A stretch of 64,000 nucleotides of DNA. Origin: Podarcis muralis. Taxonomy: Eukaryota. Below the pieces are notes generated by a model. It searched no databases and was not told the DNA's origin. It was given only the letters and a program-made list of their open reading frames with translations. How positions within the stretch are numbered: position 1 is the stretch's first letter; the number at the start of each line of letters is the position of its first letter. The stretch lies in NCBI RefSeq assembly GCF_964188315.1, contig NC_135670.1, forward strand, positions 868,001 through 932,000, given 5' to 3'. This document shows positions 5,169 through 59,200 of this stretch, piece after piece. The position numbers and the translations under genes are program-made.

Positions 5169-5368
5169 NNNNNNNNNNNNNNNNNNNNNNNNNNNNNNNN
5201 NNNNNNNNNNNNNNNNNNNNNNNNNNNNNNNNNNNNNNNNNNNNNNNNNNNNNNNNNNNNNNNNNNNNNNNNNNNNNNNNNNNNNNNNNNNNNNNNNNNN
5301 NNNNNNNNNNNNNNNNNNNNNNNNNNNNNNNNNNNNNNNNNNNNNNNNNNNNNNNNNNNNNNNNNNNN
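5169..5368. other. Assembly gap (200 N)
   Basis: Run of N between a poly-C tract and a CT-rich tract, between the ETV3 promoter and its first visible coding exon. Confidence 1.
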
Positions 5369-8080: not shown

Positions 8081-8298
8081 TACCTCAGGTTAAGTACTTA
8101 ATTTGTTCTGGAGGTCCGTACTTAACTGAAACTGTTCTTAACCTGAAGCACCACTTTAGCTAATGGGGCCTCCTGCTGCAGCCCGATTTCTGTTCTCATC
8201 CTGAAGCAAAATTCTTAACCTGAAGCACTATTTCTGGGTTAGCGGAGTCTGTAACCTGAAGCGTATGTAACCTGAAGCGTATGTAACCCGAGGTACCA
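8081..8298 (+). mobile_element. Tc1/mariner-pogo MITE with trimmed termini, inside the LTR
   Basis: Same body as 22801-23264 and 54226-54456; the outer bases of both TIRs are missing. Confidence 0.8.
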
Positions 8299-22081: not shown

Positions 22082-28335
<6,254 letters not shown>

Positions 28336-28584
28336 CGCAAGGAGACTCTGCAGAAGGAAAGGCGAAAGAGAGGAAAGTTATTTCACTGTGGTTTAATTGA
28401 TGTTGTGCCCTGCAGTGGTGGAAAGCAGGAAATAGTAATAGTAATAATAATTAATGTGTACTCTGCCTCTTCCCCTGACTCAGGGCAGCTTACAGATAAC
28501 ATAAGAGCAGTTGAAAACATATGGGGAAGACAAAAACGAACACAAATAAGTGTTAATCGAATGAAAAGTACGTATGTACATGTA

Positions 28585-28908
28585 TGGCGCTGTGGGTTGA
28601 ACCACAGAGCCTAGGACTTGCCGATCAGAAGGACGGTGGTTCGAATCCCCGCGACAGGGTGAGCTTCCGTTGCTCGGTCCCTGCTCCTTCCAACCTAGCA
28701 GTTTGAAAGCACGTCAAAGTGCAAGTAGATAAATAGGTACCGCTCCGGCGGGAAGGTAAACGGCATTTCCATGCGCTGCTCTGGTTCGCCAGAAGCGGTT
28801 TAGTCATGCTGGCCACATGACCCGGAAGCTGTACACCGGCTCCCACGGCCAATAAAGCGAGATGAGCGCCCAGAGTCGGCCATGACTGGACCTAATGGTT
28901 TACCTTTA
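28585..28908 (+). mobile_element. Sauria SINE in RRNAD1 intron 1
   Basis: Family body and tail, with GTACATGTAT duplicated on both sides. Confidence 0.9.
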
Positions 28909-28967
28909 ACGTACATGTATTATATATGTCCCTATCTATCTCCCATCAGATGTCAAGAAGATGTCAA

Positions 28968-29221
28968 CAGTGGTACTTCTGGTTGCGAATGGGATCCATT
29001 CTGGTGGCCCGTACGCAACATGAAAAGAGCACAACCCGCAGCGGCGCATCTGCGCACACACGGGTTGTGATTCGCCGATTCTGCGCATGATGTCATTTTG
29101 TGCTTCTGCGCATGCGTGAGCAGCGAAACCTGGAAGTAACCATTTCCGGTACTTCTGGGTTGCCGCAGGACATAACCTGAAAGAAGGTAACATGAAGCAA
29201 ACGTAACACAAGGTACCACTG
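28968..29221. mobile_element. Tc1/mariner-pogo MITE nested in an L2 fragment
   Basis: CAGTGGTAC...GTACCACTG termini that split an L2 3' sequence. Confidence 0.75.
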
Positions 29222-29364
29222 TATCCGACTTTTAGAAGACATCTGAAGGCAGCCCTGTTTAGGGAAGTTTTCAATGTTTGAAGTTTTATTCTGTTTTCAA
29301 TGTTCTGTTGCCCAGAGTGGCTGGGGAAACCCGGCCAGGTGGTTGGGGTAGAAATAATAAATTA

Positions 29365-29422
<58 letters not shown>

Positions 29423-29599
29423 CACCATTATCTATCATTTAAAATCATTTAAAAACACACAGGTAATTCCAATAAAAAGCGGCACATTCCAAGCAGCCTT
29501 AAAAAGAGATCCCTTCAGGGCCCCGATCCGAGGAAGGCCTTCTTCACTCCAGGCGGGGCACCCAGAGAGTAAGAGATTTTGTGGGAGGAGAGGAGGCCG

Positions 29600-30100
29600 C
29601 TCTATCCCGCGCCACGTCTATGGTCCTGCGTCCCCACAGAGCGACGGGAAGGGGGAGGGAGGGCCTTTCCAGGAGGCGCGACCCGCCTCCCCGGACCCCC
29701 CCCCCGCCCCGTGAGCCTGGCGGGCCGCGCCCCCCCCCCCCGCTCGAAAGCCCGCCGGGGCAAAGAGAGAGAGAAGCCGGTACCGTCGCGGCCTTTCCCT
29801 CGCGCCGGAAGTAGTTGCGTCCTGACCCGGAAGAGCTTCCTGCGCCCAAGATCCGGCCCCCTGGGCCTGAGGGCGCCATTTCGTCGCCGCCTTTGCCTGG
29901 AGCGGTGCGCCCGGAGGTCCCTCTTCTCTCTCTCTGCGCCTTCTCTCCCGAAGAAGAAAGGCCTCTCCGTCCCAGGCGGGACTTGGGAAGTAAGTGGCTC
30001 GTCCGCCAAGCTCGCTTTCCCGGCCGGGCCTCGCTCTGACTCGGGGGCGAAAAGCCGCCTCAGAAAATACCCCCCGCCCCCCCCCCCCCAATCAATAACT
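29600..30100. promoter_or_regulatory. CpG island, RRNAD1 promoter (probably bidirectional)
   Basis: CCGGAAGT at 29805-29812, CCGGAAG at 29827-29833, a YY1-like motif (AAATGGCGC on the minus strand) at 29873-29881, and a plus-strand donor GTAAGT at 29990. Confidence 0.75.
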
Positions 30101-30539
30101 AACTAACTGACTCAAATCAGTCCATCGCCCCAAAGTCTTTTGCTGGAACTTATTAAGGCTGGCGTGAAAACCTCGCTTCCGTTGGTTTGGCTCGGCGCCA
30201 GGGAACCTCCCGAGTTCCAGATAATAATAACAATAACAATAATAATAATAATAATAGAAAACAACATGGAAAACTACAGAACTTTTACATAACGCAGTCC
30301 TTCTTTATGACATAGGCATCAAAGAAAGAACAAGCATTTAAACCACCTAACACACATGGGAGCATGTGGAATGATAGTTTTTTTTAAACCAGCAACTAGA
30401 AATAATTTTTGATTTGATTATATTACTAATGTAATTACCTGGACATAGTTGGGGCTGCTTTTTTGGGGGGGTAGGGGAAAACTGTATTTGATTGCTTGTA
30501 TTTGATTATATGTTGTTCTTATATGCAACTAATGAATGA

Positions 30540-30850
30540 ATGAAATACTTTATTGTCACTTGTTCAACTTGTATACAGCGAGATTACAGGAGCTCCCCCC
30601 ACTCAGCTCTCTTAGTCTTAATTCCCCTCGTTTACTGACACCCACCCACCAAACCCGAAACTCAGTTGCCCTGTTGTTATCTTTTCATTCAGCAGCCTAA
30701 CAGCCCACAGATAGAAGCTGTTCTTTACCCTGTTGGTGCGACTAATCCTGCTTCTATATCTTCTGCCCAAGGGCAGGAGATTTCTGGGTTTGGATTTCTG
30801 TGTGGTGGGTGGCTGGGGGAATAGTTGAGAAGGGGTTTGCAAGAATCTGG
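30540..30850 (-). mobile_element. Rex1/Babar LINE 3' fragment
   Basis: LLPLGRRYRSRISRTNRVKNSFYLWAVRLLN matches the Rex/Babar C-terminal motif LPSGRRYRS...NSF...A.RLLN. Confidence 0.75.
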
Positions 30851-30865
30851 AAGCTTGTGTGTTTT

Positions 30866-31614
30866 CTAGGAGGTTTGGTGCTTTTGAATTTTTTGGATCT
30901 GAAGCACTGATTTATTTATTTTTTGGGTTTGCGAAGGTAGGAGCTGTGCTGCCATGGGGCCCAAGAAGACTGCTGCTGCAGAGGCCGGCGAGAGGAAGAA
31001 GGACGGCCACGAGCTGACCACCCAGGAGCTGGTCGAACTGCAGGCAGAGGCTGCGCAGGAGCAGGCCTTGCTGGAAGAGGAACGGCTGTCCTCCAAAGAA
31101 CTGGCGGACATTTGCCAGAAGTGGGAAGAGGTGCAGGCTTTTGCACAGCAGTACCACCCTGACAAGGACCTGGCACGTGACCTTGGGAACACTTTGGATA
31201 CGAGGGTCATGTCGTCTTTCAGGGAGGTGCTGAAAAGGCGGATGAAGCAGCAGACCGTGGACAGGTTCTTCAGCAAGAAGCAAAGAGTGGAAGAGGAACC
31301 TTCTTCGAGTTGTCCCCCAGAGTCTTAGAAAATGTATGTACAGTACTGTACACTTTGGTGATTTTTAAATGCTTTTCTGTCATGTTTAGAAACTTAAATT
31401 ATTGTTCCTTCAATTTTTGAAATGCTCTTTACAGTATGTGTGGCTTTAAAGAGCACTTAATAAACTCTTTTTGTACCAAATTTGGCTTTGTTTGGACTTT
31501 TTTTGACCATAGGGACGCATTAATTGATTTTCAATGCATTCCTAGGGGAATCCGTGCTTCGCAAGACGAAAAAACTCGCAGAACGAATTAATTTCGTCTT
31601 GCGAGGTACCACTG
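30866..31614 (+). mobile_element. Internally deleted Tigger/pogo transposon lacking its left end
   Basis: Right TIR ends at 31614 and matches the MITE at 26390; carries transposase N- and C-terminal remnants. Confidence 0.8.
30954..31328 (+). CDS. Intact 124-aa ORF: Tigger transposase N-terminal peptide fused in frame to its C-terminal domain
   Basis: MGPKKTAAAEAGERKK joined to HELTTQELVELQ...ICQKWEEVQAFAQQYHPDK...MSSFREVLKRRMKQQTVDRFF; Kozak GCCATGG; AATAAA at 31459. Expression is unknown. Confidence 0.45.
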   Translation: MGPKKTAAAEAGERKKDGHELTTQELVELQAEAAQEQALLEEERLSSKELADICQKWEEVQAFAQQYHPDKDLARDLGNTLDTRVMSSFREVLKRRMKQQTVDRFFSKKQRVEEEPSSSCPPES

Positions 31615-32329
31615 TGCTTCTGTTTAAGAACAGTTTCAGGTTAAGAACCGACCTCTAGAACGAATTAAGTACGTAACCAGAGGTACCACTGTACTGTCCC
31701 ACCATCTTGTCCTCTGTCGTCCCCTTCTCCTTGTGCCCTCCATCTTTCTTTAAAAATGTTTAGGGGTACTCTCATTCTCCTACTCATATTGAAATATTGC
31801 TCCTCAATGAGGCCAAAAATAGATTCACAAAATGTTTAGGGGTGTGCATACCCCAGAAAAAAAGCACTGCTCTCACCTGTCTATGTCTATTGATACCTCA
31901 TGGTATATTTTGTTGTTGTTTAATGACACTAATTTAGATAAGTCTCATGGTGTTAATGTGCCCAGATATTTAATGTTGTATTTGCAAACATGAAACTGGT
32001 ATTGTTTAAACCAGTGCTTTTTTCTGGGGGGGGCGCAGGGTTGGGTGGGTGTGTTTCTCTACTTGCCCCCGGAACACCCCCAAGAGGGTGAGAAGGTGCA
32101 AGAGGGCAGCCCAGGGGCAAGTAGAGGAGTGCCTCCCCCCACCCCCTCCTGTCCATGAATATCTGGTGAGCAGTGGGTGCACCGGGGTGGCAGTTTCTTC
32201 ACTCTGCCTAATCAGGGAGCTGGCCCTGCCACACTCTTCAACTTCAAAATAAGGAAAGCTGGTCAAAGTCATTGACAACCCTCGCTTAAATATACATTCA
32301 TGTACAGCCCCACAAACCACTCCATAGAA

Positions 32330-32591
32330 TAAGGGTCAGCAAACTTTTTCAGCAGGGGGCCGGTCCACTGTCCCTCAGACCTTGTGGGGGGGGGCGGACT
32401 ATATTTTTTTTGGGGGGGGGGAGAAGAAAGAATGAATTCCTATGCCCCACAAATAACCCAGAGATGCATTTTAAATAACAGGACACATTCTACTCATGTA
32501 AAAACACACTGATTCCCGGACCGTCTGCGGGCTGGATTTAGAAGGCGATTGGGCCGGATCCGGGCTCCGGGCCTTAGTTTGCCTACCCATG
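32330..32591. mobile_element. hAT MITE
   Basis: 8-bp TSD CCATAGAA at 32322-32329 and 32592-32599; imperfect TIRs. Confidence 0.85.
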
Positions 32592-32609
32592 CCATAGAAT
32601 GATAGAACT

Positions 32610-34185
32610 GCAGTGTTGAAAGAGACCCTAAGGGCCATCTAGTCCAACCCCCTTCAATGCAGGAAACGCAGCTGAGTTTGCGTTCAAGGGAGAGGCATAG
32701 AAGACTCAGCTCCTGGGATTCTGGCCGGGGGAGCCATGGAGGTTGAAGGAAACAGAGGGGGCATTAAGTGGAGGGCGTGTGGCTCACAGAAGCTGGAAGG
32801 GACCCCCAAGAGTCATCTAGTCAACCCCCTGCCATGTGGGAAACCACCAAGTTCCTGGGGAAGCTGCCTGCCATGGCTTGGACCAGAGGGACTGGCCCCC
32901 GCCCCCTCCTCAGGAAGCCAGGACCCTCTGCAACACACCACATCCCATCCCCACCCCTGATGTTCCGCCTTCTCACCTGCCCTCCTCGCTTGGCCCCCTC
33001 TTTCCTCAGCGCCTGCACCAGCCGGGGGTCTCCCTCGATGGCGGTGACGGAGAGGCCCAGGCCGAAGGACAGGAAGCGCGAGAGGTGGCCCTGGGGGAAA
33101 GGGGGGAAAAGACACTGCAAATAAAGCAGCCTTTGTGAGACTTCGAAAAGGAAGAGGAACCCCAGAGGCCTCCTCCCTCCCTACTTACCTGGCCAGCGCC
33201 CACGTCAACCACCTGGCGGCACCCCGTGAGCTCACTCAGCCGTTTCACCATCTGCGGGGGAAACGGGAGTCAGGGAGGCCCCTGTGGAGCTGCCCCCCAG
33301 GTAGAGGGACCCTCTGGTGGCTTCAGCAAGGGGCAGCGGCCGCTTCCCAGGAGAGGGAGAGGAGGAGGATGGGCAGCAGCAGCAGCAGGAGAGGAAACCA
33401 GGTGTGGCTGGAGGAAGAGGTGGAAGGGAGTGTGCAAAGGTAAGAAATAAAAAAAAAAATAATACTAACAAATATATACCCTGCTTTTCCCCTGACTCAG
33501 GGCAGCTTACAGATAACATAAGAACAGCTGTATGAGGCAGAAAAACATAAGAACAACGTATGGGGCAGAAAATAAAAACAAAACAAGCATTAACAGAATT
33601 AAAACTATGTATCTATATGTATGTACAGTCATACTTCGGGTTACAGATGCTTCAGGTTGCGCACTGTACCATACCCGGAAGTACCGGAACGGCTTACTTC
33701 CGGGTTTCAGCACATGTGCAGAAGTGCTAAATTGCTCTTTGTGCATGCGCAGAAGTGCCAAATTGTGACCCGTGCGTGCGCAGACGTGGCACTGCAGGTT
33801 GCAAATGTGCCTCCTGCACAGATCACGTTCGCAACCCGAGTGTCCACTGTATATATGTCTCTATCTCCCATCAGATGTCAAGAAAATAAACTACTATCCA
33901 ATTTTTAGAAGACATCTGAAGGCCGCCCTCTTTAGGGAAGTTTTCGATGTTTGAAGTTTTATTCTGTTCTTAATGTTCTGTTGAAAGCCGCCCAGAGTGG
34001 CTGGCGAAACCCAGCCAGATGGGCAGGGTAGAAATAATAAATTATCATCATCATCATCTATCAATGCATGTTCTGTTAAAAACACAGATAATCACAATAA
34101 AAATGGCACATTAAAAGCAACATTAAAAACAAATCCCTGCAGGAAAAATCCAAGGAAGTCATTGTTCACGCCCGGCATAGCTGAC
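32610..34185 (-). pseudogene. Partial duplicate of RRNAD1: copies of the exons at 25946-25884 and 25785-25639, plus a copy of intron 1 sequence
   Basis: 32610-33440 closely matches 25275-26135. Exon copies lie at 33251-33189 and 33090-32977, the second with a 33-bp in-frame deletion. 33460-34185 is a more diverged match to 28440-29555. Confidence 0.88.
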
Positions 34186-42376: not shown

Positions 42377-45300
42377 ATGGGTGGCAGAAGATTCAAGTTT
42401 TTACTTCGCTTTGGAATAGTCATCAACCTTCTCTTTGGTAAGTTGTCCAATTGCCATAGAAGGTCTGTCGCTCAGGTCTGATGGCATTGCCAAGGAGGGT
42501 TGATAGGGCCCACCCCTATCAAAGCCTGCAGAAGTTCTGCCAGTCTGTACACAAAACAAAGCTAAATATACCACATCAAGGGAAGTCATGTTGTTGTTGT
42601 TGTTTAGTCGTTTAGTCGTGTCCGACTCTTCGTGACCCCCTGGACCAGAGCACGCCAGGCCCTCCTGTCTTCCACTGCCTCCCGCAGTTTGGTCAGACTC
42701 ATGTTTGTAGCTTTGAGAACACTGTCCCACCATCTCGTCCTCTGCCGTCCCCTTCTCCTTGTGCCCTCCATCTTTCCCAACATCAGGGTCTTTTCCAGGG
42801 AGTCTTCTCTTCTCCTGAGGTGGCCAAAGTCTTGGAGCCTCAGCTTCAGGATCTGTCCTTCCAGTGAGCACTCAGGGCTGATTTCCTTCAGAATGGATGC
42901 GTTTGATCTTCTTGCAGTCCATGGGACTCTCAAGAGTCTCCTCCAGCACCAGAATTCCAAAGCATCCATTCTTCGGTGATCCAGTGGGTAGGGTAGGATA
43001 TAATTTTGATAGTTATGTTTAAGAGTGACGCTTATGATGCAATTTGTGCATTATACAGTAAGTCTAATGAATTTAAGGAAAATTCAGTCTTTATAATGGT
43101 GATAGGCAGTGCTGTATTTCTAGGAAAAGGTGCCAAAACACTTCTCTCGTTCTCTTAGAATGGCAATGGCACCCACCTGAGAGATAAACAACCCACAAGT
43201 TTCGAGGTTTCCACATTTAAACCCATTAGTGAATATTCCTGGGTTATCTTCCAGAAGTCTGAGGTTTAAGGATTTCCAGCCGAGGAGCATGTCCCTCTAC
43301 CAGTGGGGGGAGGAAAATTGCTGCCGCACCTGCCACCCACTGGGTGTGTGTGTGTGTGTGTTGTATTGTGTGCTGAGATTCCTCCTGTCTGGTTGATGGA
43401 GCTCCTTTGTAGCACCATGTCCAGGACGCCAGTTGTGCCTGGGTTTAGGTGGGCTCAATTCTGTTTTAGGAGCTGGTGCCAGGCCCAGCACACTAGATCC
43501 TCTGAAGTCTCATCCAAGGATCCTCACCATCAACTTAATTAATTTATATCTGCATATCCATTCATTATCTAAATATTTTGTCCCTCTAAATTATCCATAA
43601 TTTTTGTTACTTTACAAGTGTGGTTAAAATCCTGCTAATGTTTTCGTCTGGCTACAATGGTCTCGTAGATATATTATAATTTTCCCCCATTCTTTTTTTA
43701 AAGTTCTTGTTCTTTTGGTTTCTGAGCTTCCCAGTTAATTTTGCCATTTCAGCATAGTCCATCAACTTGGTTTGCCATTCTTCCCTGTATACATTGTTTC
43801 TTCCTTCCATCTCTGGGCTAGTAAAGTCCGTGCGGCTGTTGTTACATACATAAAAAGCCTTTTCTGGTCCTTTGTGATCTCAGTACATGTAATTCCTCGG
43901 TACATGTAATTAATTTCTTACTTAATTTTCCCTCCCCAAAAAACACCTAGGCTTTGTAAGCAATCGGGTACCAAAGACTCCTACGATTCAGCTGAACAGG
44001 ATCCTGGAAGAATCTGCCTTGCTTTCTGTACATATAACCTCGAACAATACTGTGTCCATCGTTAAATGGATATTCCACCCTCGACAAGGCGAGGCAAACG
44101 ACCTTGGGCGATTCAGCAATGGCACATGGGAGCGTTGGAATAAGAGTGACAGTTTGGGGCAGCGTCTGGAAATGGTTGATGGCACCACGCTGAAGATAAG
44201 CAATTTGGTGGTGAAGGACAGTGGGAACTACACGGCTTATGTGACGTTTTCCACAGGAGTGACAGAATCACACACATTCAGCCTCACTGTCTATGGTATG
44301 TACTTGTTTCACCATCCCACACTGTAAGGATGTGGGAGAAATTCAATCCAGTTCACTTTCACCTGCCTTTCACCTGCCCAGACAATGAGGTCCAGTGCCG
44401 AGGGCCTTCTGGTAGTTCCCTCCCTGCGAGGTTACAGGGAACCAGGCAGAGGGCCTTCTTGGTGGTGGCACCTTCCCTGTGGAACGCCCTCCCATCAGAT
44501 GTCAAAGGGATAAAGAACTACACAACTTTTAGGAGACATCTGAAAGCTGCCTTGTATTGGGAAGATTTTAATGTTTGGTGTTTTACTGTGTTTTTATATT
44601 CTGTTGGAAGCCTCCCAGAGTGGCTGGGGTAACGCAGTCAGGCATACAAAGAATAAAATATTTTTAAAAATTCATTTCTAACAGAGCCAGTGCGGGAGCC
44701 GCAGGTCACCCATAAACTGATCTCCAACGCGCCTGATGGCTGCAATGTATCCCTGCGGTGCCAGGCATCAGGAAAGGGAGACTTCCGTGTCTCCTGGAAA
44801 AGAGGGAATCCCCTCAGAGCCCTAGGCGAGAGCCCAAACTGGCACCAACTCTGTGACAGTGGGGAAGATCTCCATCTGTTCTGGCATCGCAACGCCTCAG
44901 ATGCCAACATCACCTGCCTGGTGAGCAATCCGGCTGATCAGAAGAACATTTCCATCAACCTCCTCAGCCTCTGCCCAGCTGAAGGTAAGGAACCCCTGGC
45001 CCATTTCCCCATTAGCCTTCCTTTATTTAATGGATTTGTATCCTGCCTTTCTCCAAGTTTGTTTTATTTGTCAAAATATTTGTATACTGCTGGCCGCAAA
45101 AAAGATATCAAAGCGATTTACAGCAACAAAACCATAAAACCGTATAAGAAAAGTTAAAAAGAGACATCAGTTAACTGTCTGGATTAATTAATTAGCTCTG
45201 GAGCCCACTGAAGATTCCCAGACTCCTCCCTCTATTGTGTGGGCAGGTATTCCCTCTCCCTACCTGGCCTGGTCACCTTGGCAACGCCTCCCTAGGCTGG

Positions 45301-48300
45301 ATTGGGCAACTGGCTGAGGTAGGCAGAGACCTCCAGGTATCTCACCTGGGGAAGGCGAAGCCAAGCCTGTGCTAATGGAGCCTCACTGGGTCCAGGGGCT
45401 GCGTGTGACCCCACAAAGGGCGCCCCCCCGTTTAATGTGGGGAGCGGTCATTGTGAGAGGATCAAAATGATTGTAAAATCAGTGGAGTGTATAAATCTGA
45501 AAAGGATAAATAACATTTTTTTGACAAAAAAGACCCGAGCAATTAAAACTGCAGTTTCCCCTGATATCAGCCCAGCAGTCAAGCAGTGCCTGCGTTTTAG
45601 TTTCCAAAGGCCTGTTTGAACGGGAAGGTCTTAGTCTGCCGGCAGACTAAGGAGACCAGAGAGGGAGCCAGTCAAACCTCTTCCCAGGTCACCACCAGCT
45701 CTGATTGTGATGGCCTGGGATTCGGACTCGGAGGCTGAACCTGAAGGATTCCCCACCTCCAGAACCAGCTGAGCCGGGGGATGAGCCTGAAGGGTCCTCA
45801 CCTGTGCCGGATCCTCAGGTGCAGGCACCAGCTGAGCCTGCTCTGGCTCCTGAGGTGATGGAAGACCCATTGCCTGCAGGTGCTCCACTCCCAGCCCCGT
45901 CAGGGGAAGCTGAGGTTGCCTCTGGGTCCGGTCACCCTCCAGCCTCTCTTGAGCTGCAGAGGCTCAGGGCAGAGAGGCGAAGGGAACTAAGTTCCCTCAG
46001 GAGGAGTGCTCGCCTTAGGTGAGTCACCTGAGGATTGGGGCCGCCCTATGCCTCGGGGCAGATAAAAACCACTCAGCCCCAGTCCCAGCTTGCGGGAGCA
46101 ACTTTGTAGGTTGCTCGTTCCTGCCTGAACCCAGCCCTGCGTTCCTGCCCTCACCTGACTCTCTGCCCTGCACCCAGCTCCAGCTTTTACAGACTGCCTC
46201 CAAATTGCACCTTCGACCTTGGCCTGGACTCGGACCTCGCCTCTTGGTTGCCCCACCGGACCAGCACACTGATGGTGTTGGGACCGAGAGGAGGTGCTCA
46301 TCTGAGGGACTTGGCACCCGGCCAGCTCCGTAAAGGGAGATACAATATTTTGGGTAACCTGGATCTAAGCCACGTAGGTCTTTAGAAGTCAAAACCAGCA
46401 TTCTTCTTCTCTTTCTCACAGGGAGGGACGAAGCAAGCACCATGGGGGCACGTGTTGGCGGGTGTGTGGTGAACACACAGGGTCCCCGGACGTTTCACTG
46501 TCTACTGATTCCTGTGCCACCACTTTATTTCTCGCTGCCCCCACCCAGGCCCTACCTGGGACAATACTGAATCCAGTCAGAGTTAAATTGGAACGTAAAC
46601 TTTTGTTTATTTACAGTGGTACCTCGGGTTAAGTACTTAATTCGTTCCAGAGGTCTGTTCTTAACCTGAAACTGTTCTTAACCTGAAGCACCACTTTAGC
46701 TAGTGGGGCCCAATTAGCTAATTGGTGGTGTCACCCTCCCTGTGGAACGCCCTCCCATCAGATGTCAAAGGGATAAAGAACTACCAGACTTTTAGAAGAC
46801 ATCTGAAGGCAGCCCTGTTCAGGGAAGCTTTTAATGTATTTTAATATTTTGTTGGAAGCCACCCAGAGTGTCTGGGGAAACCCAGCCAGATGGGCGGGGT
46901 TATGTATGTATGTATACATAAATAATAAAAAAATATTAACAATAAAATAATAATAAGAAGAAGAATAAGTTCTGGAAAGCCCTGGTGCAAAAACAGCATA
47001 AGTTTTTCATTCATTTAAGGAGGGTAACCAAGATGACCAAGGGTCTGAAAACCAAGCCTTATGAGGAAGGTTGAGGGAGTTGGGGATGTTTCGCCTGGAG
47101 AAGAGCGGAGGGACGGGTGATATGAGACCCACCTTGGCGATTTGATGGCAATTTGGATGGATTCTTGAGCTGGGATTCCTGCATTGCTGGGGGCTGGACT
47201 AGATGAGCCCTGGGGCTCCCTTCCAGTTCTGCAATTCTATCATGTCACCTCCTCTGCAAGTGTATTAAATAAGTTGAAATGAAATGATGCTTATCCCTTA
47301 AAGCACTGTGCAGTGCTACCTCTGGATGCGAGTAGACCGTAATATGTGACTGCGCGTGTCGCGTTTTGCCGCTTCTGCGCATGTGCGTGACGTCATTTTG
47401 AGTGCGCATGCGCGAGCGGCAAAACCCGAAAGTAATGTGCTCCGTTACTTCCAGGTCGCCGCGGAGCGTAACTTGAAAACACTCAACCTGAAGCATATTT
47501 CATAGAATCCTTGAGTTGGAAGAGACCACAAGGGCCATCGAGTCCAACCCCCTGCCAAGCAGGGGGTTTTAACCCGAGATATGACTGTATTCAGTTTGAG
47601 TAATGAGCCGTTAAGTTGGTTCCCTGAAAACTGGACTTTGGCTTCCTGTATTCCAAAACTGCAAAATTGGGATGGAGTGTTCGGCAGTCCAGGCAGCTGT
47701 GTGGTATATACTGCATTTGCTCAGCTAGAAAAGCAAATTAAGGTTTTGTGACAGCCCAGCTCTCATTCTGCCTGGAGAAAAGCTGAAATCAGTTCACTAT
47801 CTTTTCTGATGCCCTCCGTTGTTGTTGCTGTCGCCCTCAAGGGACAATTTTTGCTTATTATTGCAGGTGCAAATCAGAATAATTTTTGGATTATTTTGGG
47901 GAGTATTTTTGGGCTCGTTGTTGCTCCCGTTGCTCTCGTTGCTCTCGGACTCCTCATCTATTGGAAGTGGGAAGCATTAACATCCAGATTTCAAACGGTA
48001 GGAATGTGTGTGTGTTATTCTTCTGCCCCTCTCATCTGAGTTTGGGTTGCCACTTATTGTTTTCCCTTCCTCTTTGTTTATCCTGAGCGGCAGAATCTGG
48101 GCAGTTCCTCCAAATGATGTGTTTCATTTTACGTGCCACAGTTTTTACATCCGCAAGGCCAAAGGCACAGTTGGGTGCCAACTGTAATGCTTCCTCTAGT
48201 GCTTTCTCTCAAGTATTTCCGAATAAGGTTGGAACTCCACGAAGATTGGAATCCTCTTTACAAAACTGCTTTTAAAAAGAAGGGTGTGTGTGAAGGAGGC

Positions 48301-50209: not shown

Positions 50210-50450
50210 CACTGGTACCTTGGTTTAAGAACAGCTTAGTTTATGAACGGCTTGCATTAAGAACGCTCGAAACCCGGAAAAAGGTGTTTTGGTTTGTGAA
50301 CTTTGCCTTGGAAGCAGAACATGTTCTGCTTCCTGTTGAGTGTAAATTGAGTCCCCCGTTGCTATGGGAAAGCACCCCTTGGTTTAAGAACGCTTTGGTT
50401 TAAGAATGGACTTCTGAAACGGATTAAGTTCGCAAACCAAGGTACCACTG
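50210..50450. mobile_element. Tc1/mariner-pogo MITE
   Basis: CACTGGTACCTTGGTTT...AAACCAAGGTACCACTG inverted termini. Confidence 0.75.
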
Positions 50451-51046
50451 TGCTGTATACAACAAATGTGGCATCTCCAAGGAAACGCCCATTAAAAAAT
50501 TAGGTATATGGGTAATTGAGTCCTCTGGACGACGTAACATCTTGTAATCTACCCTGAGAGGTTAAAATGGATATGAAGAAGTCTTAAAACATTTCAGTAA
50601 CTGAAAGGAACTTGCTTCCATGCACTTTGTATTACTTTTTAGATTATACCATTGGAAGTGAATAACTCCTTGCTTACCTCTGCTATGCGTCCAGTAGCCT
50701 AGAAAAACAATTTAGCCTTAAAAACCAGGACAACCTTTTCTGGAACACCTTGGCAGCTGCAAAACGTTGGTTGATCCTACCAGCACTCCTGACCAATCTT
50801 ACAGGGATGGAATTGTTTAACGCTACATAAACTGGTGAAAAATTGTAATTGTATTCAGGTTACTGTGAAAAAGGGCTGTATTTTAAACACTGATCATAGG
50901 ATTTGGTAAGGTCTAGTGTTTTACCATTGCAAAGGTAGGGGGTGAGTTAACCCCAAGGGCTTGGTCTTGAGCTCCTGGATAGAGTTTGAAAGTGTTTGCA
51001 CACGGTTTCAACCGGCTTGCTAAACCCTCTGTGATTTAGGCCTTGC

Positions 51047-54225: not shown

Positions 54226-54456
54226 CTGTGGTACCTTGGGTTACAGACGCTTCAGGTTACAGATGCTTCAGGTTGCAGACTCTGCTAACCCAGAAATAGT
54301 GCTTCAGGTTAAGAACTTTGCTTCAGGATGAGAACAGAAATTGTGCAACGGCAGCAGGAGGCCCCATTAGATAAAGTGGTGCTTCAGGTTAAGAACAGTT
54401 TCAGGTTAAGAACGGACCTCCGGAATGAATTAAGTTCTTAACCCGAGGTATCACTG
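54226..54456 (-). mobile_element. Tc1/mariner-pogo MITE
   Basis: Same family as 22801-23264; TA flanks. Confidence 0.85.
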
Positions 54457-55062
54457 TAGTTGCATGAAGTGGGGAAGGAGGCTAATGTGGTGGGATGGCT
54501 GGAGGTTGGTGGGCAGAGCCAGCCCCTAGGACTCACATAACTTCGCAAAGTCATCCCCCCAAATAGAATGCCTGAGTTCAAAGCCCCCACTTGGCCATCA
54601 TGAAGCTCCCTGGAGGTCATGATCTTGGGGTCCAGCCACTGCCTCTCAGCCTAACCTACCTCACAGGGTTGATGTGGGGTTTAAATGAGGAGGGCAAGAA
54701 CCATCTATGCCACCTTGAGCTCCTCAAGAGAACAGGTGAGATAGAAAGGCAATAAGAAAGTGAATAAGATTAAGCCCTGAGATGTGTAAGATGGCAACTC
54801 GGGAGAAGAGAGCCCCTGAGCATCTAACCCAGTGCTGCTGTTGTTTTAAATGAGCTAATAACAACAATAATAATAATTTATTATTTATACCCCGCCCATC
54901 TGGCTGGGTTTCCCCAGCCACTCTGGGCGGCTTCCAACACAATATTAAAATACAATAATACAGTAATCAAACTTCCCTAAACAACTATTGTTGCACTCAG
55001 TGCAGAAATTAGGGAAAGGCTGTATTATGGCTAGGTCCAGTGCTTTCCCCCCAAGACAAATA

Positions 55063-56294: not shown

Positions 56295-59200
56295 ATGAGT
56301 GCGGGAGGTTCAAGCGAAGGCTCCCTCACCCTCTTGGGGGTCCTCATCGGCTTGTTCTTTGGTGAGTTACCAGAGGTTCACCTCAGAGGTTTCCCTGGAT
56401 AGGTTTTCTTTAAAATGTATGAGCAATCACACGGGGCTGCTTAAGAAGATTGGGAATATGTTTATGAAATATACTCAGAGTCGAGAGTGCTTTTTATTCA
56501 GCTCATAGTGGTGAGGAGGAATGGAAGCTCCCCCAGAATGTCTGCTTATATACCATATTTTTCGCTCTATAACACGCACACGACCATAACACGCACATAG
56601 TTTTTAGAGGAGGAAAATCCATAGGCATGCTACCCGTAGGCATTCCCTCCATAACACGCACAGACATTTCCCCTTACTTTCTAGGAGGAAAAAAGTGAGT
56701 GTTATGGTGCCCAAAATACGGTACATTATTTACACAATGGGCCCCACGTGATTGGCCAATTCCAGGATTCTCCTGCACGCCAATCAGGTCACGGATTCAC
56801 TTCCACCTGGAGCTGGATTGGGTAGCTCCTGTGGACCAGTCAGACTGCTGTATTCTGGGCCCTATTGTTCTAGGACCAATCAGACTGCTGTGTTTTGGAT
56901 CCTATTCAACTCAGTACATAACAGTTTAACTCTGTCATATGCCATTTTCCCGGTCAAAATCCTCCCTAAAAACAGCCGCTGTTAGACTCTGTGTGCCAGG
57001 GCCCCTCTCTTCAAAAGCCTCAGGAGCTACTAGGTTGCGGTGGCTGAATAGATCCTTCATGTTCAGAAGCACTCTACCTTGGAATATCATTCACTGCCGG
57101 GGGGGGGGGGGGGCAGAGAGAGACAGAAGAGAGCAAGGAACACCTCTTCCTCTCCTCCTCCTCCTCCTCCTCCTCCTCCTTGATTTTCCTCTTCTTTCTA
57201 GACCTTCTTGATTTTTTCCTCCTCCTCCTCCTCCTCAATTTTCTCGTTCTTGTTCTCTGGATCTTCTTCTCCTCCTCAACTCTTTCTTCTTCCTCTTCTT
57301 CATTAGGTGCTGTTGCTAACCCGAATAAAGCTCCTCTGCATCAGGTTACTGGGATGGCTGGAAAACCAGTCCTTTTCCCTTTAAACATAACTGCTGGGAA
57401 AACTGTGCTGTGGATCAAATGGGACTTACACCCCCGAAATGGCACCCCCTTTGAGCTTGCTGTGCTCAGGAATGGACAACTGAGGACTTCCAACCCGAAA
57501 GACATGGACAGACTAGACGTGCTTAATGAGACCACGCTGCGGATCAAGGCCTTGCAGGAAAACGAGACTGGGGTTTTGAAATCTCGAGTGACATACACCA
57601 CCTCCAAGATGGAAATATTCGAATTCAATCTCACTGTCTTTGGTAAGTCATGACGAATCCGTCCATTTTTGTCCATCCTTCTGAGCAATTAATAAGATGG
57701 CTGCAACTTCCCCCTTGACAGTTCCTGCACCAGAGAGTGACCCACCTGATGTGCCCAGCGTTTCCCAAAGTGAAGGTAAGCAATTCATTGTTCCCCTACC
57801 CCATTCTCCACATTTTCTGCCTGGGAAATTTAAGTATTCATATATAATTCATAGGGACACAGGTGGCGCTGTGGGTTAAACCACAGAGCCTAGGACTTGC
57901 CGATCAGAAGGTCGGCGGTTTGAATACCCACGACGGGGTGAGCGCCAGTTGCTCGGTCCCAGCTCCTGCCAACCTAGCAGTTTGAAAGCATGTCAAGTGC
58001 AAGTAGATAAATAGGTACCGCTCCGGCGGGAAGGTAAACAGCGTTTCCGTGTGCAGCTCTGGTTCGCCAGAAGCGGCTTAGTCCTGCTGGCCACATGACC
58101 CACAAGCTGTACGCCGGCTCCCTCGGCCAGTAAAGTGAGATGAGCGCCGCAACCCCAGGGTCACCTGCGACTGGACCTAATGGTCAGGGGTCCCTTTATC
58201 TTTACCTTAAGTTGTGTTTTGCTGGAAATTCTGTTGTGTGTAACATAATTTGCACCCTGTTCTCTCGAAACTGAAGCCCCTTGTGTTTTCAGTGTTCCTA
58301 CATGCTTAGCTTTGGAGCACACAGAGCAGCTCTGCCTCAGTGCCCCCCCTTGTCCCCCCTTGCCTCTTATTCCACAGCCTGCCAGGGGTGCTGCCACCCA
58401 CTCTGGGAACTACTAAGTTAAAGCTATTTCCAAATGCGTACATACCATGCAGGGACAGTTATTAATTCACACCATTAAGGTGCACCAAATTCCTGAGTTT
58501 TTATCACTTTGATGGCTTTGTCCTGTCCAGCAATCTATAAACATTTTAATAGAACAAAACCCTTCAGTTTAAAGCTAAAGGTAAAGGTACCCCTGCCCGT
58601 ACGGGCCAGTCTTGACAGACTCTAGGGTTGTGCGCTCATCTCACTCTATAGGCCGGGAGCCAGCGCTGTCCGCAGACACTTCCGGGTCACGTGGCCAGCG
58701 TGACAAAGCTGCTCTGGTGAGCCAGCGCAGCACATGGAACGCTGTTTACCTTCCCGCTAGAAAGCGGTCCCTATTTATCTACTTGCACCCAGAGGTGCTT
58801 TCGAACTGCTAGGTTGGCAGGCGCTGGGACCGAACGACAGGAGCGCACCCCGCCGCGGAGATTCGAACCACTAACCATGCGATCGGCAAGTCCTAGGCAC
58901 TGAGGTTTTATCCACAGCGCCACCCGCGTCCCTCAGTTTAAAGCTATGGAGAACTTAATAGTTTTGGATTGCAAATTGAACCCATTTGCTTATTTTCATC
59001 ATTTTATCCCCTCATTTTACCTTGGGATGCGCAAACTGGCATTTTGATTGCAGAAGCCCCTAAGGAATAACGTTTGTTCATTGCAGGGGAATGGAGGACG
59101 ACTCTGGTGTGCTTCATTGTTGCCATGACGGCTGCAGGTTTTCGCTTCATGCAAATAGTTTTCAGAAGGTCTGAAAGAGGTAGGGAAGAGGCGTGTTTTT

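Follow-up and report, generated by a model that had tools for sequence, protein, structure and literature searches.

The question raised by this locus is whether the plus-strand half of the RRNAD1 CpG-island promoter, in a 64,000-nucleotide (nt) stretch of Podarcis muralis NC_135670.1, drives a small gene made from the remains of a Tigger transposon, and what kind of gene that would be. We refer to the whole stretch as the window and give all coordinates as window positions. RNA reads confirmed a two-exon transcript that leads from this CpG island into a Tigger1-like copy and is apparently unannotated, and the arrangement is a transposase capture by a non-coding host exon. Domestication of the encoded protein and a dominant-negative role for it are unproven.

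A spliced transcript joins the RRNAD1 CpG island to a Tigger copy

About 20 sequencing runs from 6 studies contain part of the stretch, and four runs were mapped on 28150-34100. The splice junction described below comes from X23, X24 and X21, which are raw RNA reads from two studies, X23 and X24 being stranded bulk libraries. X1 is a Logan contig set, the library kind of which was guessed and which behaves like RNA. The first coding exon of RRNAD1, on the minus strand, served as the control for strand and depth. The features of the transcript are as follows.

29866..29989, plus strand: exon 1, non-coding and devoid of ATG (5′ end approximate)
29990..30936, plus strand: intron of 947 nt with GT..AG ends, its joint read in X23, X24 and X21
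30937..31480, plus strand: exon 2, terminal and Tigger-derived (3′ end approximate, ~31425-31500)
30954..31328, plus strand: open reading frame (ORF) of 124 amino acids (aa), opening at the 5′-most AUG of the spliced transcript, in a GCCATGG context, and lying wholly in exon 2

The original prediction had assembled this gene from the letters alone, and each of the signals it relied on was found where it had been placed: the donor (GAA/GTAAGT at 29989/29990), a CTGAT (30907-30911), a T-rich tract (30910-30925), AG dinucleotides at 30935-36 and 30939-40, the GCCATGG, the 124-aa ORF and an AATAAA at 31459-31464. The splice 29989->30937, one that had been predicted, was present on the plus strand in three RNA runs, with 26 reads (21 distinct starts) in X23, 32 reads (27 distinct starts) in X24 and 70 reads (44 distinct starts) in X21, and the shorter overhang of the junction reads measured at least 69 nt (69-75 nt). 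In both stranded runs the first mate of every junction read lay on the minus strand, an orientation opposite to that of the reads from the minus-strand RRNAD1 exon, which places the RNA on the plus strand in agreement with the GT..AG ends of the intron.

Exon 1 is covered by an X1 contig (29866-29992, depth 193) that ends at the junction, and about 157 X21 reads fall at 29896-29906. No ATG was found in 29800-29989. Since exon 1 thus offers no ATG, the earliest one in the RNA is that of the ORF, which exon 2 reaches after 17 nt. Over the ORF (30936-31333) the depth in the plus RNA orientation was 39-47 in X23 and 63-84 in X24, against ~0-2.5 in the other orientation, and the X1 contigs 31039-31245 and 31216-31442 had depths of 267-359. 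The bin with the RRNAD1 coding exon reached 1.2 (X23) and 3.1 (X24); with exon length allowed for, the steady-state depth of the mini-gene was ~13-20 times that of the RRNAD1 exon. Intron depth amounted to ~4-8% of exon 2 depth in the stranded runs, and intron pieces in X1 had depths of 20-44. The Tigger copy is transcribed from the host promoter as a stable spliced mRNA. Neither the exons nor the intron matched an RNA family in Rfam, and no small nucleolar RNA or microRNA that would make the transcript a host gene was found.

One intronic segment, 30538-30736 on the plus strand, showed a same-strand RNA depth of 6-14, compared with 0.3-2.6 in the bin just 5′ of it. A repeat or a minor alternative exon could account for this segment, and no junction to it was listed.

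At the other end, mapped depth drops between ~31333 and ~31440, and the AATAAA at 31459 is a candidate poly(A) signal. The drop arises partly because the 3′ untranslated region (UTR) of the window differs much from that of the sequenced animals: differences at 31356, after 31395 (an insertion), and at 31443, 31456, 31467 and 31470 form a cluster that brings reads close to the 95% cut-off. In X1, a contig with a comparable depth runs beyond 31470. The segment 31443-31470 carries four substitutions in 28 nt, flanking the AATAAA and leaving it untouched, a divergence far higher than that in the ORF.

The terminal exon derives from an internally deleted Tigger1-like transposase gene

The ORF corresponds to residues 1-17 and 456-566, less five residues, of a 566-aa Tigger1-like transposase from Lacerta agilis (P0160). 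This protein bears the name 'tigger transposable element-derived protein 1-like', stands for 45 members clustered at 90% identity and was the closest of the lacertid full-length proteins recovered by a search seeded with a Pogona member. Residues 19-124 of the ORF are 83% identical to residues 456-566 of P0160, and residues 1-16 occur unchanged at the N-termini of two Tigger derivatives of Podarcis muralis. In alignment A3, residues ~18-455 of the parent are deleted, by which both helix-turn-helix (HTH) domains and the DDE core are gone. Pfam likewise gave no CENP-B_N, HTH_Tnp_Tc5 or DDE_1 match on the ORF, only sub-threshold noise. The anatomy that had been proposed, an MGPKK N-terminus joined to the C-terminal tail of the transposase without HTH and DDE regions, was thereby borne out. 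Two features of the copy matter here.

31002..31007, plus strand: internal-deletion junction (codons 17-18), joining residue ~17 to residue ~455 in alignment A3
31329..31615, plus strand: 3′ non-coding part of the Tigger copy as read from the letters, with the AATAAA and the right terminal inverted repeat (TIR), ending ...GGTACCACTG at 31615

At the deletion junction, the codon is readable as a fusion of the two codons that flanked the deletion. RNA reads cross this junction and carry a single allele per run, with 31006 G>A in 46/46 and 61/61 reads of the RNA's orientation in the two bulk runs.

A word-based protein search with the ORF returned two matches only, both Podarcis muralis entries named 'uncharacterized protein' (189 and 204 aa, 86% identity), in which the first 16 and the last ~105 residues of the ORF enclose a CENP-B_N helix-turn-helix. 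An exhaustive search of the library gave 175 related proteins (E<=0.001). The match of the ORF is to the very C-terminal end of proteins 545-590 aa long that have CENP-B_N, HTH_Tnp_Tc5 and DDE_1; most of the long relatives checked had DDE_1 and HTH_Tnp_Tc5, and three had CENP-B_N as well. Relatives from Pogona, Pelobates and other species also bear the name 'tigger transposable element-derived protein 1-like', and the homology of the ORF to Tigger transposase is clear. A PDB sequence search with the ORF gave nothing relevant, the exact ORF was not in the protein collection, and no annotated orthologue protein was found.

P0001, P0002 and the window ORF represent independent in-frame deletions that all keep the tail, with right breakpoints within ~25 codons just upstream of HELTTQ. 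This clustering of breakpoints could reflect ascertainment, a hotspot or a preference.

The right TIR of the copy (31548-31615) is 95.6% identical to the end (26389-26456) of a miniature inverted-repeat transposable element (MITE). Within 4 kb upstream no left TIR was detected: matches to the right end fell only on the MITE at 26389-26728, with nothing in 26728-30954. Because the right TIR is kept and the left one is not detectable, the copy is an immobile, 5′-truncated and internally deleted Tigger1-like element, as had been supposed. Its right flank adjoins another repeat, and no TA duplication can be read there.

Both of these neighbours are of some interest by themselves. The MITE (~340 bp, 26389-26728) lies in the RRNAD1 region, is complete, has the terminal repeats of the Tigger copy (CAGTGGTGCC...GGTACCACTG) and is flanked by TA on both sides. 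The repeat that adjoins the right end of Tigger (31614-31693) belongs to a different family of short repeats, also ends in GGTACCACTGT and may represent another Tigger-mobilised MITE family, with copies elsewhere in the window.

8081-8151, 22800-22865, 23187-23267, 46612-46691, 50382-50456 and 54379-54458: other copies of the 31614-31693 repeat

The CpG island fires in both directions

The promoter and its divergent partner comprise the following features.

29540..30080, no strand: CpG island and bidirectional promoter (GC 0.69, CpG observed/expected 0.83)
29805-29812 and ~29873: CCGGAAGT and GCGCCATTT inside the CpG island, putative regulatory motifs
28240..28347, minus strand: first coding exon of RRNAD1, the divergent partner, with its ATG at 28335 (borders predicted from sequence only)

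The island is single copy in the window. In the stranded runs, minus-strand RNA gave signal in 29543-29741 and none in the neighbouring bin 29742-29940, and low minus-strand coverage extended from the island down to the RRNAD1 coding exon, while plus-strand RNA begins at ~29866. Minus-strand signal on one side and plus-strand RNA on the other indicate that the island fires both ways. The divergent starts lie less than 1 kb apart in this one island, the start of RRNAD1, at a depth of only 1-3, being approximate. Just 5′ of the apparent plus-strand start stand two ETS-like motifs, CCGGAAGT (29805-29812) and CCCGGAAGA (29826-29834), and a YY1-like GCGCCATTTC (~29873-29882) stands at the start itself; ETS-like and YY1-like motifs are usual in bidirectional housekeeping promoters. 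Farther along the RRNAD1 strand, the ORF 23680-24498(-) has a Pfam match to Methyltransf_32.

In human, ISG20L2 and RRNAD1 have a common CpG island (PMC5979289). It had been proposed that in the window the half opposite RRNAD1 is an orphaned promoter, and the part of this proposal that concerns activity held, as the plus side does fire. As for the partner, a Pfam search found no exonuclease-type ORF of at least 90 aa on the plus strand in 35-56 kb, which is a weak negative for ISG20L2. The data are consistent with the plus half of the RRNAD1 promoter having lost the gene that it usually serves.

The retained tail carries a predicted helical hairpin and a PIP-box-like motif

The protein begins with the 17 N-terminal residues of the transposase, continues with an acidic linker and a helical hairpin predicted with confidence, and has a motif that resembles a PCNA-interacting protein (PIP) box. 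An AlphaFold model built with 41 homologues predicted three helices (residues 23-41, 47-67 and 71-109) with a mean predicted local distance difference test score (pLDDT) of 77.5, rising above 90 over about residues 50-100. Foldseek found no match of the model in PDB at E<=0.001, and VIA-align (wide) returned generic helical hairpins only (Z<=7.5). A profile of the 41 sequences searched against PDB sequences retrieved no CENP-B domain and nothing relevant. The Pfam family CENP-B_dimeris gave a match with only 1/41 tail homologues, at no better than E=0.0075, and none with the ORF itself. The predicted fold says nothing about dimerisation, and CENP-B-type dimerisation is neither shown nor excluded. 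The suggestion of the original prediction that the fragment acts as a dimerisation-domain dominant-negative is unsupported, as neither sequence nor fold matched the CENP-B domain and a PIP-box-like motif was found instead.

31248..31271, plus strand: PIP-box-like motif QQTVDRFF, residues 99-106 (Q99, V102, F105, F106), fitting Qxx[LIMV]xx[FY][FY]

Basic residues come after QQTVDRFF. In the 41 tail homologues the motif columns are occupied by Q in 33/39, L/M/I/V in 36/39, F/Y in 34/38 and L/F in 34/37 (85-92%). Residue 102 is V in the window allele and M in the other haplotypes and in the paralogues. Broader PIP-box definitions allow V at position 4. With V admitted at that position the tail contains a PIP-box motif; the pattern given in PMC5371812 is Qxx[L/I/M]xxF[F/Y]. 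The transposase of Drosophila pogo binds PCNA via a PIP box (Warbrick 1998, as cited in PMC5371812), and the motif is conserved in Tigger, although its functional relevance in pogo/Tigger is described as unclear (PMC5371812). A PIP peptide derived from pogo has high affinity for PCNA (PMC4103810). The pogo PIP box, p21 and PAF15 all share with the window ORF a C-terminal motif of the Qxx[LIM]xxF[FY] type followed by basic residues (PMC5371812, PMC4103810). The window allele differs from them in having V at the hydrophobic position, and the lizard Tigger motif is a putative PCNA binder.

The ORF is intact among haplotypes, and evidence of selection is mixed

Besides the window, at least two further haplotype groups were seen under one species label, ~2.5% from the window in non-coding DNA, and the mini-gene is intact and spliced in them. 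Runs under a second organism label contain 21-23% of the sampled words of the stretch.

The ORF differs between these haplotypes at three sites, G18D (31006), E49Q (31098) and V102M (31257), all of them nonsynonymous; at positions 18 and 102 it is the window that has the derived state relative to the family. As there are zero synonymous differences, no ratio of nonsynonymous to synonymous change (dN/dS) can be formed. When the window copy was compared with eight lacertid relatives, 9/12 differences were unique to it, several of them at positions invariant in those relatives (D18, H67, F81 and M102), and the changed positions were no less conserved than average (permutation P=0.36). In an ORF of 375 nt, 4.6% of point changes give a stop, and staying open at such divergence is unremarkable. 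With all differences nonsynonymous, family-invariant positions changed and conserved columns unavoided, near-neutral evolution of the protein is suggested.

Several observations weigh against such neutrality. Across the four mapped runs the ORF was free of stops and indels, and it stayed open in each haplotype observed; neither of the two deletions in the copy shifts the reading frame; and the PIP-like motif has been kept. The ORF also differed from the X1 haplotype at 1/290 nt, compared with 23/882 nt for exon 1, the intron and the proximal 3′ UTR, and the contrast (Fisher, p=0.015 against the flanks and p=0.03 against the intron alone) hints at constraint on exon 2. Taken together, the evidence for selection on the ORF is mixed.

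Comparison with known transposon-derived genes

The locus resembles published cases of transposase capture, such as KRABINER, in that a host exon is spliced to an acceptor just 5′ of the transposase start codon, at a distance of 17 nt here, and the transposon supplies a coding terminal exon (Cosby et al., 10.1101/2020.05.07.082677). It departs from them in two respects. The host exon in the window is non-coding, so no host domain is fused, and the ORF is without the DNA-binding domains that predominate in known captures, where they make up 76.5% of transposon-derived domains in the capture survey (Cosby et al., 10.1101/2020.05.07.082677).

With CENP-B, TIGD1-7, JRK/JRKL, POGK and POGZ it has in common a derivation from the pogo superfamily (Tigger1-like in this case), immobility and a host promoter (PMC7386202, PMC4231638). 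Compared with those genes, the window ORF consists of 17 N-terminal residues and a ~105-aa tail only, and has been seen only in haplotypes of wall lizards that are closely related. Domesticated pogo/Tigger genes, in contrast, keep CENP-B_N and HTH_Tnp_Tc5, usually with DDE_1, and are conserved over long times.

The closest parallels are LOC144327444 (189 aa), LOC144327885 (204 aa) and a 317-aa Pogona vitticeps protein named 'major centromere autoantigen B', which are Tigger1-like, arose by in-frame internal deletions and retain the N-terminus and the same tail; the Podarcis pair is of the same family and 86% identical over the tail. All three have other breakpoints and kept the CENP-B_N HTH, the Pogona protein also HTH_Tnp_Tc5. 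A looser analogy may be drawn with the KP and type II repressors of the P element and with defective mariner copies, dominant-negative in the latter case, internally deleted transposons the truncated protein of which could interfere with the full-length enzyme. KP keeps its DNA-binding and dimerisation parts and resides on a mobile element, whereas the window ORF has no DNA-binding part, is immobile and would interfere only in a purely hypothetical manner.

Weighing the explanations of the locus

On balance, the locus is probably a young, lineage-restricted proto-gene, in which a strong promoter half and a transposon-borne acceptor yield an RNA that is probably translated into a protein evolving near-neutrally. 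The plus side of the RRNAD1 CpG-island promoter starts the transcript near 29866, donor 29989 is joined to the acceptor 17 nt 5′ of the start codon of the immobile Tigger1-like copy, and that copy supplies the whole terminal exon. By this account acceptor and poly(A) signal would come from the transposon too, and ordinary scanning would suffice for translation. The locus would be a by-product of a partnerless promoter half meeting a transposon splice site, rather than an established domesticated regulator. Other Podarcis muralis deletion derivatives are annotated and have different breakpoints, which indicates that such ORFs arise repeatedly. Of the captured Tigger mini-gene that had been postulated, the structure stands, as junction and ORF anatomy attest, and the domestication is unproven, the tests of selection being mixed.

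Should the tail-only product be selected after all, the locus would encode a domesticated small protein acting via the PIP-box-like motif and/or the helical hairpin. Such a protein would compete for PCNA, either with Tigger transposase or with PIP-box proteins of the host, or would poison transposase complexes, and would repress through PCNA or the tail rather than through a CENP-B-type dimerisation domain. The strong, well-spliced expression and a first AUG in good context fit this explanation, as do an ORF that no observed haplotype disrupts and that has diverged less than its flanks, and a PIP-like motif that is intact and family-conserved and for which PCNA binding by pogo is on record (PMC5371812). 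A target may exist as well, given the 566-aa Lacerta agilis relative with three transposase domains and its 45-member cluster at 90% identity. However, the three recent differences in the ORF are all nonsynonymous, one of them (M102V) affecting the hydrophobic residue of the motif; positions invariant in the family bear changes unique to this copy, and conserved columns are not avoided. Moreover, no dimerisation domain was matched, no orthologue is annotated as a protein, and what the PIP box does in pogo/Tigger transposition is itself described as unclear (PMC5371812). We therefore consider domestication conceivable but doubtful. We attach still less weight to the more specific idea that the tail-only Tigger protein binds PCNA (or the transposase tail) and restrains a recently active lacertid Tigger or alters replication or repair.

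Alternatively, the ORF may be irrelevant, and a functional non-coding RNA or the act of divergent transcription may tune the shared promoter or RRNAD1. A bidirectional CpG-island promoter, a depth much above that of RRNAD1 and the scarcity of differences across exon 2 as a whole, beyond nonsynonymous sites, would suit this explanation, but Rfam was empty for exons and intron, a first AUG in strong context with no AUG upstream makes translation hard to avoid, and nothing links the level of the transcript to RRNAD1, so that it appears improbable. A mapping artefact, with the ORF reads coming from other Tigger copies and no transcript at the locus, is hardly credible. The family is multi-copy and nearby terminal repeats do gather thousands of reads; yet the junction reads have 69-75 nt on the shorter side and exon 1 is unique within the window, wherever the ORF varies a given run has one allele only (53/53 and 97/97 reads at 31257, for instance), nearly all bulk reads share one orientation, and the known paralogues have 86% protein identity and other deletion breakpoints.

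Other features of the window

The region at 35-56 kb contains a partial RRNAD1 duplicate and immunoglobulin (Ig)-domain exons. Just 3′ of the mini-gene, 32615-33443 is a same-orientation duplicate of 25277-26138 (92.5% identity over 862 aligned columns) and represents a partial RRNAD1 duplicate. The ORF 44690-45154 on the plus strand has weak Ig/C2-set matches and presumably belongs, as an exon, to a gene for a SLAM-like receptor that lies upstream of another at 56295-59179. In the interval from the RRNAD1 coding exon to the CpG island there are repeats resembling short interspersed nuclear elements (28548-28945 and 29145-29343), which showed an RNA depth of 40-240 in both orientations, with reads from multi-copy relatives elsewhere. 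A run of N occupies 5169-5368.

Implications

The locus shows gene birth at an early stage, at which a strong promoter half became joined to a transposon fragment via an acceptor just 5′ of the transposase start codon; this promoter half apparently lost its usual partner gene after a rearrangement. Transposase capture is a kind of event already known, and the protein collection has no entry identical to this ORF. If the protein is made and selected, domestication would extend to a transposase tail with a PIP box, and the lizard would provide a natural tail-only protein for probing what the PIP box contributes to pogo/Tigger transposition. Should it moreover act by binding PCNA or the transposase tail, it would be the first pogo-derived domestication to keep only the clamp-binding tail and no DNA-binding domains. 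If it is unselected, the locus documents the ease with which young Tigger deletion derivatives become expressed ORFs, whether annotated or missed.

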